From Pecten maximus (Eukaryota), in assembly GCF_902652985.1 (NCBI RefSeq), contig NC_047016.1, positions 39,308,001-39,372,000 on the forward strand: a stretch of DNA of 64,000 nt. The letters are read 5' to 3'. Shown piece after piece: positions 1 through 57,740 of this stretch. Both the position numbers and the translations under genes were made by a program. Within the stretch, counting starts at the first letter, position 1, and each line of letters opens with the position of its first letter. The notes under the pieces are model-generated. The model was given only the letters and a program-made list of their open reading frames with translations. It was not told the DNA's origin and searched no databases.

Positions 1-1538
1 CTGTAGACAGAGACATCAAACTGTAAATAGAGAGACATCAAACTGTAAATAGAGAGACATCAAACTGTAAATAGAGAGACATCAAACTGTAAACGGAGAG
101 ACATCAAACTGTAAATAGAACTGTAGATGGAGAGACATCAAACTGTAGAGAGAGACATCAAACTGTAGAGAGAGACATCAAACTGTAAATAGAGGACATC
201 AAAACGTAAATAGAGAGACATCAAACTGTAGAGAGAGACATCAAACTGTAGATGTAGAGACATCAAACTGTAAATAGAGAGACATCAAACTGTAAATAGA
301 GAGACATCAAACTGTAGAGAGAGACATCAAACTGTAAATAGAGAGACATCAAACTGTAGAGAGAGACATCAAACTGTAAATGGAGAGATATCAAACTGTA
401 AATGGAGAGACATCAAACTGTAAATAGAGAGACATCAAACTGTAGAGAGAGACATCAAACTGTAAATAGAGAGACATCAAACTGTAAATGGAGAGATATC
501 AAACTGTAGATGTAGAGACATCAAACTGTAAATAGAGAGACATCAAACTGTAGAGAGAGACATCAAACTGTAAATAGAGAGACATCAAACTGTAGAGAGA
601 GACATCAAACTGTAAATGGAGAGATATCAAACTGTAAATGGAGAGACATCAAACTGTAAATAGAGAGACATCAAACTGTAAATAGAGAGACATCAAACTG
701 TAAATAGAGAGACATCAAACTGTAGAGAGAGACATCAAACTGTAAATAGAGAGACATCAAACTGTAGAGAGAGACATCAAACTGTAGAGAGAGACATCAA
801 ACTGTAGAGAGAGACATCAAACTGTAGAGAGAGACATCAAACTGTAGAGAGAGACATCAAACTGTAAATAGAGAGACATCAAATTGTAAATTGAGAGACA
901 TCAAACTGTAAATAGAGAGACATCAAACTTTAAATAGAGAGACATATCAAAATGTAAAAGGAAAATATCAAACTGCAAATGGAGACACATCAAACTTTGA
1001 ATGGAGAGACATCAAAACGTAAATGGAGAGACATCAAACTGTAAATAGAGAGACATCAAATTGTAAATAGAGAGACATCAAACTGTAAATAGAGAGACAT
1101 CAGACTGTAAATAGAGAGACATCAAACTGTAAATAGAGAGACATCAGACTGTAAATAGAGAGACATCAAATTGTAAATAGAGAGACATCAAACTGTAAAT
1201 AGAGAGACATCAAACTGTAAATAGAGAGACATCAAACTGTAGAGAGAGACATCAAACTGTAGAGAGAGACATCAAACTGTAGAGAGAGACATCAAACTGT
1301 AGAGAGAGACATCAAACTGTAAATTGAGAGACATCAAACTGTAAATAGAGAGACATCAAACTGTAGAGAGAGACATCAAACTGTAAATAGAGAGACATCA
1401 AATTGTAAATAGAGAGACATCAAACTGTAAATAGAGAGACATCAAACTGTAAATAGAGAGACATCAAACTGTGAATAGAGAGACATCAAACTTTAAATGG
1501 AGAGACATCAAACATAAAGGGAGAGACACAAAACATAA
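1..1538. repeat. Minisatellite of mixed 22-bp (AGAGAGACATCAAACTGTAAAT) and 20-bp (AGAGAGAGACATCAAACTGT) units, cut by the window start
   Basis: Units read directly; degenerates after about 1490. Confidence 0.97.
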
Positions 1539-3708: not shown

Positions 3709-3991
3709 ATAGAGTAAGAAATCAAAACACAGAGCAGTGAGGATAGAAAAGGAAAAGAAAAATTAAAATCTCAAGCGTTGCATTGTAGGCAGATATTTTA
3801 TTTCCCTATCATGGATCCATGACGGACAGTTCCTACCATTGATTTTCAACTTTCATGTTCGAGGAAAGATATTGACCAGTTTGCTTCACAAGCATGGTTG
3901 AGTAAATCAAATCTGTCTCCTGCAGCGTTAGTGGTTTTCTGTCCTTGTCTAACATCAAAACCTCCTTCCGATTTTCCTGATGTCCTTTCTG

Positions 3992-5157
3992 CACCGACGA
4001 GACCTAGAAGGACGAAACAGCTGTATTGTGTCCCAAGCATCACTGACGAGTCCTAGAAGGACGAAACAGTTGTATTGTGTCCCAAGCATCACTGACGAGT
4101 CCTCGAAGGACGACACAGTTGTATTGTGTCCCAAGCATCACTGACGAGTCCTAGAAGGACGACACAGTTGTATTGTTTCCCAAGCATCACTGAGAAGTCC
4201 TAGAAGGACGAAACAGTTGTATGGTGTGTCCCAAGCATCACTGACAAGTCCTAGATGGAGGAAACAGCTGTATTGTGTCCCTTACATCACTGACGAGTCC
4301 TAGAAGGACGAAACAGCTGTATGGTGTGTCCCAAGCATCACTGACGAGTCCTAGAAGGACGACACAGTTGTATTGTTTCCCAAGCATCACTGAGAAGTCC
4401 TAGAAGGACGAAACAGTTGTATGGTGTGTCCCAAGCATCACTGACAAGTCCTAGATGGAGGAAACAGCTGTATTGTGTCCCTTACATCACTGACGAGTCC
4501 TAGAAGGACGAAACAGCTGTATGGTGTGTCCCAAGCATCACTGACGAGTCCTAGAAGGACGAAACAGCTTTATGATGTCACTAACATCACTGACGAGTCC
4601 TAGAAGGACGAAACAGCTGTATGATGTCACTAACATCACTGACGAGTTCTATAAGGACGATGCAGCTTTATGATGTCCCTATCATCACTGACGAGTCCTA
4701 GGAAAATACAGCTGTATGATGTCACTAACATCACTGTCGAGTCCTAGAAGGACGAAACAGCTGTATGATGTCACCAACATCACTGACGAGTCCTAGAAGG
4801 ACGAAACAGCTTTATGATGTCACTAACATCACTGACGAGTCCTAGAAGGACGAAACAGCTGTATGATGTCACTAACATCACTGACGAGTCCTAGAAGGAC
4901 GAAACAGCTGTATGATGTCACTAACATCAATGACGAGTTCTATAAGGACGATGCAGCTTTATGATGTCACTAACATCACTGACGAGTCCTAGAAGGACGA
5001 AACAGCTTTATGATGTCACTAACATCACTGACGAGTCCTAGAAGGACGAAACAGCTTTATGATGTCACTAACATCACTGACGAGTCCTAGAAGGACGAAA
5101 CAGCTGTATGATGTCACTAACATCAATGACGAGTCCTAGAAGGACGGTACAGCTGTC
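3992..5157 (+). ncRNA. Tandem array of about 24 hammerhead ribozyme units (49-51 bp), array A
   Basis: Consensus CATCA-CTGACGA-GTCC-TAGAA-GGAC-GAAA-CAGCTG-TA-TGATG-TCACTAA contains the CUGANGA and GAAA cores, a 4-bp stem II, a GUA (NUH) triplet and complementary stem I arms. Consensus-intact units have the CTGACGA core at 4290, 4490, 4590, 4832, 4881 and 5077. Confidence 0.92.
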
Positions 5158-8100
5158 ACACCATACTGTAAAGACCAAGCTATATATGGTCAATGTAATG
5201 AATGTTCGTCATTGGTTTCCAATTACCGACATAACTCTTGTGTGGAAAAGTGTGTAAAAATTAAGCTTCATGAATGCAAGAATCAACCAGAATTTTTAAT
5301 TATATTATCTATATAACCTGTTGACTTTGTATATAACTTAGCCTACACTTTGACGGTACTTTTGTTTTTTCTGACGTTGTAATGAACACATTACTTTTCA
5401 TTATCCGTCACGTCAGCCCTAGTCAATATCAGCCACTGTGTAAAACATATATAAATGTGGCTGATAGTCACGCGCGCATGTCATTTAAACCCTAAATAGT
5501 GATACTCGTTAAAACCACTCTTAAAATAACAAATAGAAAATAAAAACACTTCAAAATTAAAAAGCCCTATTATCTATACTGCTTCTGTGTATGTTAAATG
5601 TAAAACAAATGGTTAATTTGAATACAGATTTGCTAAAATTTGATAAAATTTAACACGTTTTATGAGTTTCATATTGCCAATGCATATTCATGCCATCATT
5701 TCCAATCTTTATCAATTTCATAGTATAGCGATGTTTGACTTAACGCGTCATATGTGAACTTGGCAAGACTATTTGACAACATATCCATCTTACACAAACA
5801 AGCACCTGCGAGTATTGAGCCGTGTGTACTAATTGTACAGTAAACTGGTAGTGATACATTTGCCCTGTACTGATGGGGTCACCCGCGGGTTAATAAGTAC
5901 ACGATGGAGTAATGATCCAATCAAATAGGTCGTTTGTCACTCGAATTAGAGAAACAGTTTATTCGACATTGCTTATCAATACCGTAACTTCTTTTATCTC
6001 CGAAAGTAATTATTGTGTTGATATGACAATTCGTTATATGACCTCGGTTGTAAATAAATAAATAAATAAATGCGACCAGATTTCATTCTTCAAAACAAAC
6101 CAACAAACAAACAAGCGACAAACAGACAAAAAAGACAGACAAAGAAAGAAAGAATTGAGCGAACGAACGAACAAATGAACGAAGAACAGATTCAATTTAA
6201 AGCTCAATCAATTTTGTACTCATTTTAATTTTTGTGGTCATTTACTCCCGGAACCTATTCAATTTACACGCTCATTAGTTTATGTGTACTAAACAGTACA
6301 TGTATTCATACAATTTTTCAAAGGTCAAACTTCTGTAAATGAAGGTCAAATAAAGATGTAGGTCAAATAGAGGAAACAATAAGTTGAAATGAGGACGTTT
6401 CCCAATAATTAAACTAGTTTCTATTGTAACAATAAAACGTGATCGGCTGCACTCTATTACTTTACGCTCAAGGCCGCAAATGAGCGCAAAAACCGGAAGT
6501 CACGTGACAAACCGGAAATTTCCTCTTCAATAGCAGGAGAAAGATATGTTATCGAGTCAACTATGTACCCGCATATTTCTACATTTCCTAGAATTATTAG
6601 ATGCCGGAAATTATTTATTGTATGTTAGTGTATACCAGGACACTTGTGTACTCTAATTAAATCTTATCTGGTCCGGGTTACAGCACCTTTATCCATATTG
6701 TATTGTGAGCTTCGACTTTTATCAGATCTATGCTGGGGGTTCAGACAGACGGCGAGAAATGCTTTCCTCGCAATGAATTGAACAAATCATGTAATTGGGG
6801 CGACAATTAGAAATTAGTTCGTAGGGAACGCTGACTGTCTGCAGCCTGGAGCACTTTGTGACGCTTTGTTTTGTTTTTATTTGTGTTTATGTTTTTTCCT
6901 TTTCTGTTCCGGTTCCGGTTCCTGTTTTTTTCTGATTCCGAGTTCAGATTTCTTTCTATTGTATTAGCGCTATGGGGTGTTGTTTTTGTTTCAATCATAT
7001 ATATTTTCCCCCTGAATGCCGTTTGAACGTAACGCCCTGTATACATGACTGTCCGACCGTACATACCTAAAATCATTGGTAATACCACTCCAATGACAGA
7101 ACACATTCTCAAGGAAAGTCAAACCCAGGATACATACATGTCACAATGTGTCTTCCAACAAAGAAATGGAACTCAAAACTGTCAAAACACAAAGTAAACA
7201 AAAATAGGCTAAGTTAGAAGATAAGGTGTCCATTTTCAACAACAACCTTTTTAATTCCTCTCCGTTTTCCAAACATTGCAAGGGAAATCTTTTTGATACT
7301 GCTACTTGAAATTATTTTGGGAAAAACACAAAATCATTTATGATACTGAGATTTGGTAACACGCCATTAAATGAAGGGGACTTTACTAACAAGTTGTTAG
7401 ATGTCATGAATGGAAACGAATCTTTGTCTGTCTTTTTGAGGTCATCGTTTGGGCTCACAGCAAGGTCGTATTTGATATCAAAACCTTATCAATGTGTCCC
7501 CCATATCTATTGTCAGATATATCAATGGTGTGTTTTCTTGAGATGCCTAGAACGTCCACTTAAACTTGAAGTCAAAGTCTTCCACATTGTTTAATAGTGA
7601 ACTTTCACTTTCTTGAGAGAAGCATAAATGCTTTCCCCATCTGTGTTAAGCTTCGCAGGTGATCCCACAGATGAACGAGATTCCATTAAATAAGTTCAAC
7701 TGATGATCCGATTAATTCGTTTGGTTGATCTTGACGTTTACTTGCAAACGCTAGAGTCAGTTGTCCTCATCTTGAACACAGAGATATTTTTCTCCTTCCT
7801 ATACGAGGTAATATTTCAAAATATGTGTACATGTACATATTTCTTGTTCGCTTTTCTAAATCATCGATATCAAATATTTTAGCGTCATAGATTTACCTCC
7901 ACTAAAAGGAACGTAAGTGTCTATTTTTTTTATTCATTAATTTTTTTGTTTAGATTTATTGCCAAATAATTATCGTTCATGGCTTTCAGTTTCCGTTTGA
8001 TCTCGGCTACCATTAAAGTTGAAATCCCTACAGACTAACGTATAGGGAATGGGCTGACAAAATCGATTGTTGATAACGTGTTCTTAGATCATACCTTTTT

Positions 8101-8475: not shown

Positions 8476-9200
8476 GCTAATTCATAAACAATATCGAAGT
8501 AACTTGCAACAAACCTAATGCAGCTTGCTAATTTATAAACAACCCTAACGTAAAATCGCAAACAAACCTTATGTAGCTTGCTAATTCACAAACAGCAATA
8601 ACGGTTAACCGCAATCAGTCCTAATGTAACTTGCTAATTTAAAAGCAATGCTAATTTAACGACTTTAAATAAATGAGATTAATTCACAAAATAAAAGCTA
8701 ATGTAGCTCGCTAATTCACAAACACCGCTAATGTAGCTATCTAATTCATAAACACCTCTAATGTAGCTATCTAATTCACAAACACCTCTAATGTAGCTCG
8801 CTGATTCACAAACACCGCTAATGTAGCTCGCTGATTCACAAACACCGCTAACGTAGCTCGCTAATTCACTAATGATGTTACTGTAGCTCACCCATTCACA
8901 AGCAGTGCTAATGTATATCGCTCATTTACAAACAATGCTAATTTAGCTCTCTAATTCACAAACACCGCTAATGTAGCTCGCTGATTCACAAACATTGCTA
9001 ATTTAGCTCTCTAATTCACAAACAATGCTAATTTAGCTCTCTAATTCACAAACAATGCTAATTCAGCTCTCTAATTCACAAACAATGCTAATTTAGCTCT
9101 CTAATTCACAAACAGTGCTAATGTAGCTCACTCATTCACAAGTAATGATAATAACTCGCTAATTCACAAACGTTGTTTATGTAACTTGCTTATTCATGAA
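8476..9200. repeat. 30-bp minisatellite (GCTAATGTAGCTCGCTAATTCACAAACACC)
   Basis: Regular 30-bp period over about 8697-9170 with degenerate flanks; explains ORF 8679-8891. Confidence 0.93.
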
Positions 9201-55300: not shown

Positions 55301-56969
55301 AAAGCTTGATTTCCGACAAAGACGGTCATATAACATTATGACTGATTTCTGATTTACAATGTAGTCTTTGTAACAAAAAAAATATCTTATAGAAATCACG
55401 CCAAAAAGATGAATGTTGAAGAGTTGAATACAATGATATGATAAAATAGTTAAATATGAAATGAACTGCTCTTTTTTTCCACTACGCATTTATTTCAAAT
55501 CTTTCAAATTTTGAACTTGATTTATCAAAAAGTCTCGAACAAAATCAACCGTATTAACAAGGGAGGTCATTCTGATATAGACTTCAGGTAAAATATTTCG
55601 TAAAATTTACAAAGAAAGCATTGGAATGTCTGCAGCTATCTATTTGCTGGCGAGGGCTTCCGTACCGACGCCCTGATTTAAGTAGTACTTACTTGCTTTC
55701 CCTAAATCTTCCTTGTCGATAACCATTGAACGACGGCTCATAAACTTCGGCTACCTCCGCCAGGGTTCGGCCGAGGGGAGATAAACCCTGGCCTCATGCA
55801 GAGATAGGCCTTGTTTTCCGTGTCTATGGCCCACTGTTTATAGCCAATTAAGGCCAGTGCTTTGAAACAATTAACGGCGAAAACAACCTACATATTGATT
55901 AGGAAAATGTGAGACAAATTTCCCAGGCTATTGTCTTAAAACATTTACGTGAAACAAAGATAACAACGACAATTCGATCAGTTAAAAATTGTTGCACCTC
56001 TGTAAAGTTGAGTCATATGCTAGGCGTGGCTAACACGGGTTCCCACTGTAGTTTTGCAAGTTTCGTTATGCAAATATAATGTTACGTTATATTGAGAGCT
56101 GTTTTTTTCAAAATCAAAAAGCTTTTGGTCATAGATACAATTTTTAACATCAATGAGATAAAAAAACAAAAACAAAAAACAAAAAAAAACAAAAAAAAAC
56201 CAATAATGTGAAATAATTGATAACTGGAAGGTAATCTTTATTACACAGACTACCCTCCACACAATCGTCGTTAACATGCTCGACTTTTCACCTTTCCGAT
56301 CCTTTCCAGGACTCCTTATACCCAGATCAAATTGCCTAATTATTATATTTAATATTATATGTAAATTTTATGCTATTAATGACAAGGCGCAATTGGCATA
56401 GTCTGTGTTAGCTTTCGCTAGGCCCTTATGCAGTTCAACCAAGTTTGCGATACTTAACGAAAGCCTAATGAAACAATGGCAAACGTAATGTAAAGAGCAG
56501 CGACCAAAATATAGATATTAGAATTTCGGTTTTTCTCATTGTCATGGTAGAAGCCAGTATGACCCCTTTCTTGATTCTGAGGGACCCCATATGAGTCAAG
56601 CACGAACGACCTTAATTTGCTGATGTTTTTTTAGTTGTACTTTTTCAGTTTTACAACTTTCCTTTCATAAGCAGCGTACGCAGTGACACTATACCCAGAA
56701 ACATGTGCTTGTATGTCCTATTGAACTTGCTGTAACCATGCGTCGCATCATGTTAGCATCTTTTCTGTGTGTACCTGTAATTATATTTATAGATGTGAAG
56801 GTTTTCCTGTCTTCGCTATTTTAGTTTGCTAATTAACTTCCGTTTCCAAACTGACTTGTATCAATCAAATGACCTTATAACTAATCTTCACAGTACCCTA
56901 ATATTTTGACATTTCCTTAGACCTATTTCGAATCATTGTTCGCCACCTTTGATAAATTAAGACCTTCAG

Positions 56970-57354
56970 CATCACTGACGAGTCTTAGAAGGACAAAACA
57001 GCTGTATGATGTCTCTAACATCACTGACGAGTCTTAGAAGGACAAAACAGCTGTATGATGTCTCTAACATCACTGACGAGTCTTAGAAGGACAAAACAGC
57101 TGTATGATGTCTCTAACATCACTGACGAGTCTTAGAAGGACAAAACAGCTGTATGATGTCACTAACATCACTGACGAGTCTTAGAAGGACAAAACAGCTG
57201 TATGATGTCACTAACATCACTGACGAGTCTTAGAAGGACAAAACAGCTGTATGATGTCACTAACATCACTGACGAGTCTTAGAAGGACAAAACAGCTGTA
57301 TGATGTCTCTAACATCACTGACGAGTCTTAGAAGGACAAAACAGCTGTATGATG
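56970..57354 (+). ncRNA. Homogeneous array of 8 hammerhead-derived 49-bp units, array C, predicted inactive
   Basis: CTGACGA cores at 56975, 57024, 57073, 57122, 57171, 57220, 57269 and 57318. Every unit reads GTCT-TAGAA-GGAC-AAAA-CAGCTG-TA (GAAA changed to AAAA). Confidence 0.92.
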
Positions 57355-57740
57355 CAGTATAATTCATTTTGGCTCTACTACATCGAACTCACAATTTGTT
57401 TTGAAAGTTGATCAAATCTTGTATATCTTTTGTACAGTCCTAAGAGGCTATGTCAGCCTACATATATCACGGGTCTTTTCCCATTTGAGCATATTTGATA
57501 TACACAAGAAAAGCCTGAATGTTTCGAAACAAGGATTTCTTTAATTTTGCCAACGGCGATCTTAAGCTTACGTTTGACGTATATTAGTAGATACTACCTA
57601 CGTTGTCTTGTTATCTAAGTGGTTTATTGGCGAATGCATTCCCGGAGAGAATTTATTTCAGCCTTTTCTACATTGCTGCCTCTCTCACGGTAAAATGCTA
57701 TGATCTAATATTTAGTCAAATTTTGAATTTTACATTTCAG

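Follow-up and report, generated by a model that had tools for sequence, protein, structure and literature searches.

A dispersed 49-bp hammerhead repeat of the king scallop in which adjacent units are predicted to fold as one type III ribozyme

Hammerhead arrays and their flanks in the window

The window analyzed here is a stretch of 64,000 nucleotides from the genome of the king scallop, Pecten maximus (contig NC_047016.1, positions 39,308,001 to 39,372,000). Close to its start lies a 49-bp tandem repeat, for which Tandem Repeats Finder reports 23.7 copies with 89% matches at 3992-5156. Splitting the repeat at the predicted cleavage site resolves it into 24 units (array 1, Table 1), all of them 49 bp long except for four of 51 bp and one of 46 bp. 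The consensus unit, written as RNA, is UGAUGU-CACUA-ACAUCA / CUGACGA / GUCC-UAGAA-GGAC / GAA / ACAGCUGU / A, such that a helix I hairpin is followed by CUGACGA, a helix II hairpin, GAAA, the palindrome ACAGCUGU, and an A. This arrangement contains the conserved hammerhead core (CUGACGA and GAAA) and an NUH cleavage site, the triplet GUA. Six units in the window score 35.0-35.8 bits against the type I hammerhead model RF00163 and thereby pass its gathering score of 34, and the 32-nt catalytic segment has 30 matches in the window at three or fewer mismatches, compared with none in shuffled sequences. A previous sequence-only reading of this locus had described ACAGCTGT as a perfect 8-nt palindrome and TGATGT-CACTA-ACATCA as a 6-bp hairpin spanning the unit boundary, and direct reading confirms both. 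It had also placed the repeat at 4541-5125; the repeat is present there, but the array continues outside this interval, to 3977-5157. Array 1 begins and finishes near the cleavage site.

Table 1. Hammerhead units, junctions, and flanking arms in the window (positions counted from the first letter of the window)
Feature	Position	Strand	Basis or description
Array 1, 24 tandem hammerhead units	3977..5157	+	Tandem Repeats Finder, unit table, RF00163 matches
Left-half subfamily of array 1	up to 4572	+	helix I UGGUGU/GCAUCA or UUGUGU; frequently ACAGUUGU; 200-bp higher-order repeat
Right-half subfamily of array 1, the one described in the sequence-only reading	4573-5157	+	
Second usable junction	4757..4813	+	core and GUA site intact; one mismatch, at the distal helix III pair 15.7/16.7
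Perfect junction	4855..4911	+	helix III 5' strand ACAGCUGU, A17, helix I hairpin, CUGACGA, helix II hairpin, GAAA, helix III 3' strand ACAGCUGU
Example of the single-unit type I reading	4875..4918	+	RF00163 35.8 bits vs gathering score 34; helix III of 2 bp with AGCU loop
Degenerate palindrome ACAGCTTT (G16.2 to U)	4564..4571; also 4806, 5002, 5051	+	unit table, junction check
Degenerate palindrome variant GCAGCTTT	4662, 4953	+	unit table, junction check
Array 2, three decayed units	16140..16303	-	Tandem Repeats Finder, segment matches
Conserved left arm, ~75 nt, approximate boundary	56895..56969	+	TTTTGACATTTC..GACCTATTTCGA..TTAAGACC; precedes arrays
Array 3, 8 units, 99% identical	56970..57354	+	all G12 to A (GGACAAAAC); GUCU helix II with G-U pair
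Conserved right arm, ~87-92 nt	57355..57441	+	genome matches, alignments; follows many arrays and solo hammerheads

Within the left half of array 1, 4173-4572 forms a higher-order repeat of 200 bp, in which 4173-4372 and 4373-4572 are near-exact duplicates, each composed of units of 49, 51, 49, and 51 bp. At the other end of the array, CACACCATAC directly follows the last palindrome (5148-5170). Given that CACACCATAC is the reverse complement of GTATGGTGTG, the start of a left-subfamily unit, array 1 appears to end with a short inverted piece for which the palindrome acts as the hinge. Unrelated tandem arrays also crowd the window (9-1532, 26796-27884, 30952-31641, 38401-38654, and 8680-9196, with periods of 22, 31, 32/65, 42, and 30 bp), and two ORFs of 379 and 284 aa that lie inside two such unrelated arrays are probably artefacts. 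The window holds no ORF of at least 150 aa outside simple repeats and no Penelope-like gene adjoining the array.

The window contains two further arrays of the repeat. To judge from its sequence, array 3 is inactive in its core yet recently amplified, and it is bordered by conserved arms that recur elsewhere. For the right arm, at least 40 genome matches were scored; almost all of them end at or before about query position 92, and most end between 85 and 93. Many arrays start at one unit position (position 13, immediately before CATCACTGACGAG) after a left flank of ~75 nt and stop at another (position 5, between GTATGATG and CAG) before a right flank of ~90 nt. These shared arms and fixed end phases are found at 56895-57441 of the window and at loci L009, L017, L021, L025, L037, and L041, and they suggest a short mobile carrier element with an internal hammerhead repeat; the hammerhead segment looks like a variable-number repeat inside such a short, non-autonomous carrier. 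In array 1 the conserved arms are not clearly visible. At L041 (G000 C10:37052043; ~1450-1500, minus strand) a solo hammerhead lies between the conserved arms, and its palindrome has been changed at two positions to ATAGCTAT, which is still perfectly self-complementary and is the only compensated helix III variant that we have seen. The L041 locus matches an 878-nt contig from an RNA library.

Predicted folding of single units and of junctions

Taken by itself, a unit forms the minimal type I hammerhead that the sequence-only reading had described, with a stem III of only two pairs, A15.1-U16.1 and C15.2-G16.2, closed by an AGCU loop. The active fold is predicted to make up 2e-4 of the ensemble of the 44-nt type I unit, 1e-3 of that of a linear 49-mer, and 3e-4 of that of a 49-nt circle. 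In the MFE structures of all three, the CUG of the core is paired with the CAG of the palindrome; the active monomer fold is predicted to sit 4.9 kcal/mol above the MFE, and the predicted 49-nt circle contains just two hairpins. A lone unit should therefore seldom fold actively, since helix III lacks the strength and the CUG of the core is occupied by the CAG of the palindrome. Pairing the palindromes of two free 49-mers is predicted to gain about 7.9 kcal/mol, from which it follows that association in trans should require a high concentration.

The junction between two units behaves differently in the same predictions. The 57-nt string quoted in the sequence-only reading corresponds exactly to 4855-4911, and its type III fold, with predicted cleavage following 4863 (A17), is both the MFE and the centroid structure at -19.6 kcal/mol (shuffles -10.3 +/- 2.4; z -3.9). 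In a two-unit RNA the type III fold is likewise the predicted MFE and centroid structure (z about -3.9). In this predicted structure helix III is open and helices I and II are capped by loops, which is the type III topology. The earlier proposal that the palindromes of adjacent units pair into an 8-bp stem III, with stems I and II looped, thus agrees with the predicted MFE and centroid of the consensus junction. When the core is forced to be single-stranded and the three helices are enforced, the active fold accounts for 0.41 of the predicted ensemble of this junction. Set against the 2e-4 to 1e-3 for the monomer or the 49-nt circle, this value supports, in silico, the proposed dependence on multimers.

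The isolated junction 4856-4910 aligns end to end with the type III model RF00008 (model positions 1-54) at 44.9 bits and an E value of 1.4e-9, a score that lies below the gathering score of 48.5 and above the 35.8 bits obtained for a unit read as type I with RF00163. Junctions in another array (L002) match RF00008 at 30-35 bits, also under the threshold. For an RNA of five units, the local hairpin of helix I is predicted at a probability of ~0.95, the long-range helix I of a type I arrangement has a probability of 0, and internal palindromes pair with either neighbor at 0.45-0.5. As a prediction for the consensus junction, the type III fold in cis has computational support.

Where the sequence-only reading went too far is in its claim that each junction folds a full hammerhead. 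In every junction of array 1 we examined the cleavage triplet, the core, both hairpin helices (I and II), and the helix III formed between units, and among the 12 junctions in or touching 4541-5125 only one is perfect and one nearly so (Table 1), such that the claim is true of the consensus and not of the locus. Five of the 12 carry ACAGCUUU, which produces a C15.2-U16.2 mismatch adjoining the core, and five have inactivating core changes, namely A6U, C3A (in two junctions), GAU for GAA, and a 3-nt deletion that takes out part of helix II and G12. Palindromes are perfect in only 6 of 12 within this interval.

The repeat family across the scallop genome

In the Pecten maximus assembly (918,306,378 bp in 3,983 scaffolds; PMC7191990), a query of three units gives 266 matches dispersed over many chromosomes, and the intact 32-nt catalytic segment has 546 exact copies, compared with none for a reversed control. 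RF00163 scores reach 42.1 bits in other arrays of the genome. The family shows genomic traits like those of retrozymes, in that it consists of dispersed tandem repeats of low GC content, each unit of which carries a type I hammerhead. The loci retrieved provided 458 units, which belong to 26 arrays. In about 20 of these 26 sampled arrays the most frequent palindrome is ACAGCTGT, which gives a 2-bp helix III (A-U and C-G) capped by the palindromic loop AGCU. By simple criteria for the core and the cleavage site, about 153 of the 458 units are intact (a sum of per-array counts), and 60 of the 328 adjacent junctions in the sample possess all of the sequence features that the fold requires.

Across 396 units the palindrome is the most conserved segment (mean major-allele frequency 0.956), in a setting of fairly even conservation in which core, loop, and stem positions all fall between 0.86 and 0.96. 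We found no compensatory double changes in stem pairs among these 396 units, and adjacent palindromes are no more complementary to each other than are those of units randomly re-paired within the same array (P = 0.16). Transitions that retain a G-U wobble are the most frequent stem variants; they stand at 7.4 against 4.3 array occurrences per site in stems and at 4.8 against 5.4 at unpaired positions, such that an excess is present in stems, on the ribozyme strand only, and absent at unpaired positions. This modest excess is no more than suggestive, because the arrays are not independent.

The commonest loss in the core is a change of G12 to A, found in 21% of the 396 units. It lies in a CpG (noted for unit positions 37-38 and 22-23), a setting that fits decay of the DNA copies through methylation. 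In each of several arrays, array 3 included, one of G12A, C3A, or C3U is fixed throughout, and the units are nevertheless highly homogeneous, which argues that present-day expansion at the DNA level does not need an active ribozyme. In locus L010 (G000 C5:37225490-37226067), two arrays on opposite strands abut head to head, such that the plus-strand units run straight into reverse-complement units; L002 and L015 contain units on both strands.

Pieces of the repeat of 74-105 nt, with 90-99% identity, are numerous in contigs of two RNA-seq and two probable RNA libraries, and most of them have the CCCUA loop 1 variant that occurs genome-wide. These matches speak for presence only, given that assembled contigs carry no information on ends, strand, or level, and DNA carry-over is possible. 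An RNA-library contig with unique flanks, considered as a candidate for a larger retrozyme, turned out to represent a solo copy of the hammerhead located on C10. Among the papers searched, none connects hammerhead ribozymes to satellites of scallops or bivalves.

Several candidate origins were considered and set aside. GIY-YIG (Penelope-like) genes have at least 150 matches in the genome; an origin from Penelope elements found no support, in that no hammerhead core lies within 1.5 kb of 30 GIY-YIG loci, a small sample that is possibly of the Naiad type. Hammerhead-less GIY-YIG loci fit the report that Penelope-like elements of bivalves belong mostly to the Naiad clade and are without hammerheads (PMC8557442). 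A classical retrozyme with cargo was represented by a hypothetical unit of 206 nt, made up of the right arm of array 3, the left arm, and one ribozyme, and this unit is no more structured than shuffled sequences in either linear or circular form (z +0.3 to +0.5). Array ends as the ends of cleaved RNA were rejected as well: the recurrent ends fall at unit positions 13 and 5, inside helix I and beside the conserved arms, and ends that lie away from the cleavage site cannot serve as general evidence for the insertion of self-cleaved RNA.

Interpretation and relation to known hammerheads

We propose, with a probability of roughly 0.65, that the repeat is a compact double hammerhead, that is, a dispersed 49-bp family in which adjacent units would fold as one type III ribozyme and activity would depend on multimers. 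The interval 4541-5125 is the right half of a 24-unit array in a dispersed king scallop repeat family, and the unit is a canonical animal hammerhead in which helix I has 6 bp and helix II 4-5 bp, and the 2 bp of helix III together with the self-complementary AGCU loop make up the 8-nt palindrome ACAGCUGU. The palindromes of units n and n+1 would pair into a helix III of 8 bp and helices I and II would be hairpins, giving the type III topology. Successive ribozymes are parted by nothing but the 5-nt loop closing helix I, and with this loop as the sole separator the two-copy hammerhead would collapse into a 57-nt fold within one strand. A lone unit would seldom fold actively, and a junction or multimer would do so. 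Array 3 and arrays elsewhere appear to reside in a short mobile element with conserved arms; most DNA copies are decayed, and array growth is independent of catalytic integrity. We infer cleavage, multimer dependence in vivo, and any circular product.

We also infer, from the sequence of the units, that the classical double hammerhead contains the type III fold as its inner half. When two contiguous 49-nt units are written out, the exchanged helix I of the inner ribozyme is the UGAUGU-CACUA-ACAUCA hairpin, and the outer ribozyme would require a long-range helix I to which the model assigns a probability of zero. An active concatemer alongside a stable monomeric circle is the textbook inference for viroid and newt hammerheads and is not new. 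The mechanism is already known. The compact single-strand arrangement, together with its higher score as type III than as type I, neatly illustrates how tandem duplication can permute an RNA, a route that has been raised as a possibility for ribozymes in work on natural RNA permutations (PMC10085705). It is conceivable, although we think it unlikely, that head-to-tail duplication with no spacer turns a type I into a type III hammerhead in such a way that intact arrays yield 49-nt RNAs, which, if ligated, would be the smallest known ribozyme-bearing circular RNAs and could seed new arrays.

The strongest competitor to a working double hammerhead, clearly less probable but deserving of serious weight, is a neutral DNA satellite, in which the hammerhead was inherited from a short mobile element with one copy, slippage or unequal crossing-over then multiplied the 49-bp segment, and the folded RNA is now idle at this locus and at most loci. 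Such a satellite is compatible with the potential to fold and denies merely its use. It accounts well for the 99% homogeneity of arrays fixed for inactivating core changes, for losses concentrated at CpG sites (G12 included, with 21% A), for uniform conservation over core and loops, and for the 200-bp higher-order repeat, and it sits comfortably with the arms and end phase (start at 13, end at 5) that many arrays share away from the cleavage site and with solo hammerhead copies bearing the same arms. It is harder to reconcile with the persistence of 546 exact intact catalytic segments, with the enrichment of wobble-preserving transitions in stems on the ribozyme strand only, and with the palindrome being the most conserved block.

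The other readings grant the ribozyme a use but fare worse. An ultra-minimal retrozyme, in which a self-cleaved 49-nt RNA would be circularized by a host ligase, reverse transcribed by rolling circle (e.g., by a Penelope-like enzyme), and inserted in tandem, seems to us improbable. Tandem arrays on many chromosomes, the presence of the repeat in RNA libraries, the abundance of GIY-YIG genes (at least 150 matches), the description in a 2026 preprint (10.64898/2026.07.22.740005) of retrozyme families whose consensus is as short as 51 bp, and an array 1 that spans about one cleavage site to another would all suit it. However, many arrays lie between the same arms at a fixed phase off the cleavage site, which points to expansion inside a carrier and not to independent insertions of rolling-circle cDNA; furthermore, the 30 GIY-YIG loci have no hammerhead within 1.5 kb, and the hypothetical unit assembled from the arms and one ribozyme lacks a rod-like fold (z +0.3 to +0.5). 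That each unit acts alone as a type I hammerhead, with the palindrome as a mere mini-helix closed by a tetraloop, is the least credible of these explanations and to us highly improbable: single units do pass the Rfam type I threshold, and cleavage by the monomer has been reported for many type I hammerheads of invertebrates (PMC7761336), but helix III has just 2 bp, the active monomer fold is predicted to occupy 2e-4 of the ensemble at 4.9 kcal/mol above the MFE, and the type I helix I has a predicted probability of 0 in multimers.

The compact double hammerhead that we favor resembles several known systems and departs from each. Animal hammerheads are described with helices I, II, and III of 6, 4, and 1-2 bp, the last capped by a palindromic loop of 2-4 nt; a single copy is inactive and a dimer within a tandem repeat is active, a multimer/circle logic that is credited to earlier work on viroids (PMC4209133, PMC7761336, PMC6765202). 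The double hammerhead itself goes back to Forster et al. 1988 on newt satellite 2 and avocado sunblotch viroid, as related in PMC4209133 and PMC6765202. In such a structure the helix III segments of two copies pair with each other, the core of each copy is completed by the cleavage site of its partner, and the copies also swap helix I. The scallop repeat shares with newt satellite 2 and avocado sunblotch viroid the helix III of 1-2 bp and the short palindromic loop, through which two copies form one long helix, and multimers are active and monomers inactive there as they are predicted to be in the scallop array. The ribozymes of newt satellite 2 are ~330 nt apart. Whereas the newt and viroid ribozymes are thus separated by a whole repeat, those of the scallop are contiguous, such that the inner helix I is a hairpin with a 5-nt loop and the whole becomes a 57-nt type III fold in cis.

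The type I motif with its 6-bp helix I, 4-bp helix II, and weak palindromic helix III is also that of non-LTR retrozymes (PMC7229834, PMC7761336, 10.64898/2026.07.22.740005), which likewise form dispersed low-GC tandem repeats in animal genomes that also hold Penelope-like elements. Non-LTR retrozymes have a cargo and a self-paired circular RNA, whereas the scallop unit is the ribozyme alone (49 bp) and lies in many arrays between arms. Published animal hammerhead repeat units measure about 150-450 bp (PMC7229834), and retrozyme consensus lengths extend from 51 to 972 bp in the 2026 bioRxiv preprint (10.64898/2026.07.22.740005); the 49-bp ribozyme-only unit is at the lower limit of reported repeat lengths. 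For the hammerheads of Penelope-like elements, published accounts describe reliance on a palindromic 15.2-16.2/loop 3 segment and a second copy nearby (PMC4209133; Lunse et al. 2017 via PMC6765202), as in the scallop. The Penelope-like hammerheads lie in pseudo-LTRs beside an RT/GIY-YIG gene and combine a long helix II (6-8 bp) with a short helix I and one bulged base, whereas the scallop hammerhead has a helix II of 4-5 bp, a helix I of 6 bp, and no adjoining Penelope gene. Penelope-element hammerheads cleave poorly in vitro, dimers included (PMC4209133).

With the type III hammerheads of RF00008 (viroids, plant virus satellite RNAs, and plant retrozymes), the scallop junction has in common the predicted topology, the core, and a GUH site. 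It differs in its score of 44.9 bits, below 48.5, and in a helix III that is built from two copies of one palindrome, as a result of which each palindrome can serve either neighbor. A metagenome scan for the same core and helix II gave at least 131 matches in at least 120 contigs; among the matches listed, most have a long helix III, the multi-hit spacings are 241-3452 nt, and a 49-nt spacing does not occur.

If intact arrays are transcribed and cut, the 57-nt construct would be the most compact natural multimer-dependent hammerhead, in which one could dissect, free of spacer sequence, how cleavage and ligation proceed and what the helix III palindrome does, and the family would be a living illustration of a duplication route between the type I and type III topologies. 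Understanding of the hammerhead mechanism would be unchanged, given that the principle has been known since 1988, and we regard the interest of the system as moderate to low unless processed or circular 49-nt RNAs are demonstrated. With the scallop repeat, the hammerhead-bearing repeats gain a mollusc family that stands at their lower size limit. Genome annotation benefits as well, in that a dispersed 49-bp satellite with 546 exact copies of the catalytic segment is explained and tied to a short carrier element. The Schistosoma elements Sm-alpha and Sj-alpha are short, non-coding, dispersed, SINE-like elements that carry a type I hammerhead. The putative scallop carrier resembles these elements, to which PMC6765202 refers, as a short, dispersed, non-coding carrier of a type I hammerhead; it differs in that its hammerhead segment alone has grown, within the carrier, to arrays of as many as ~45 units.
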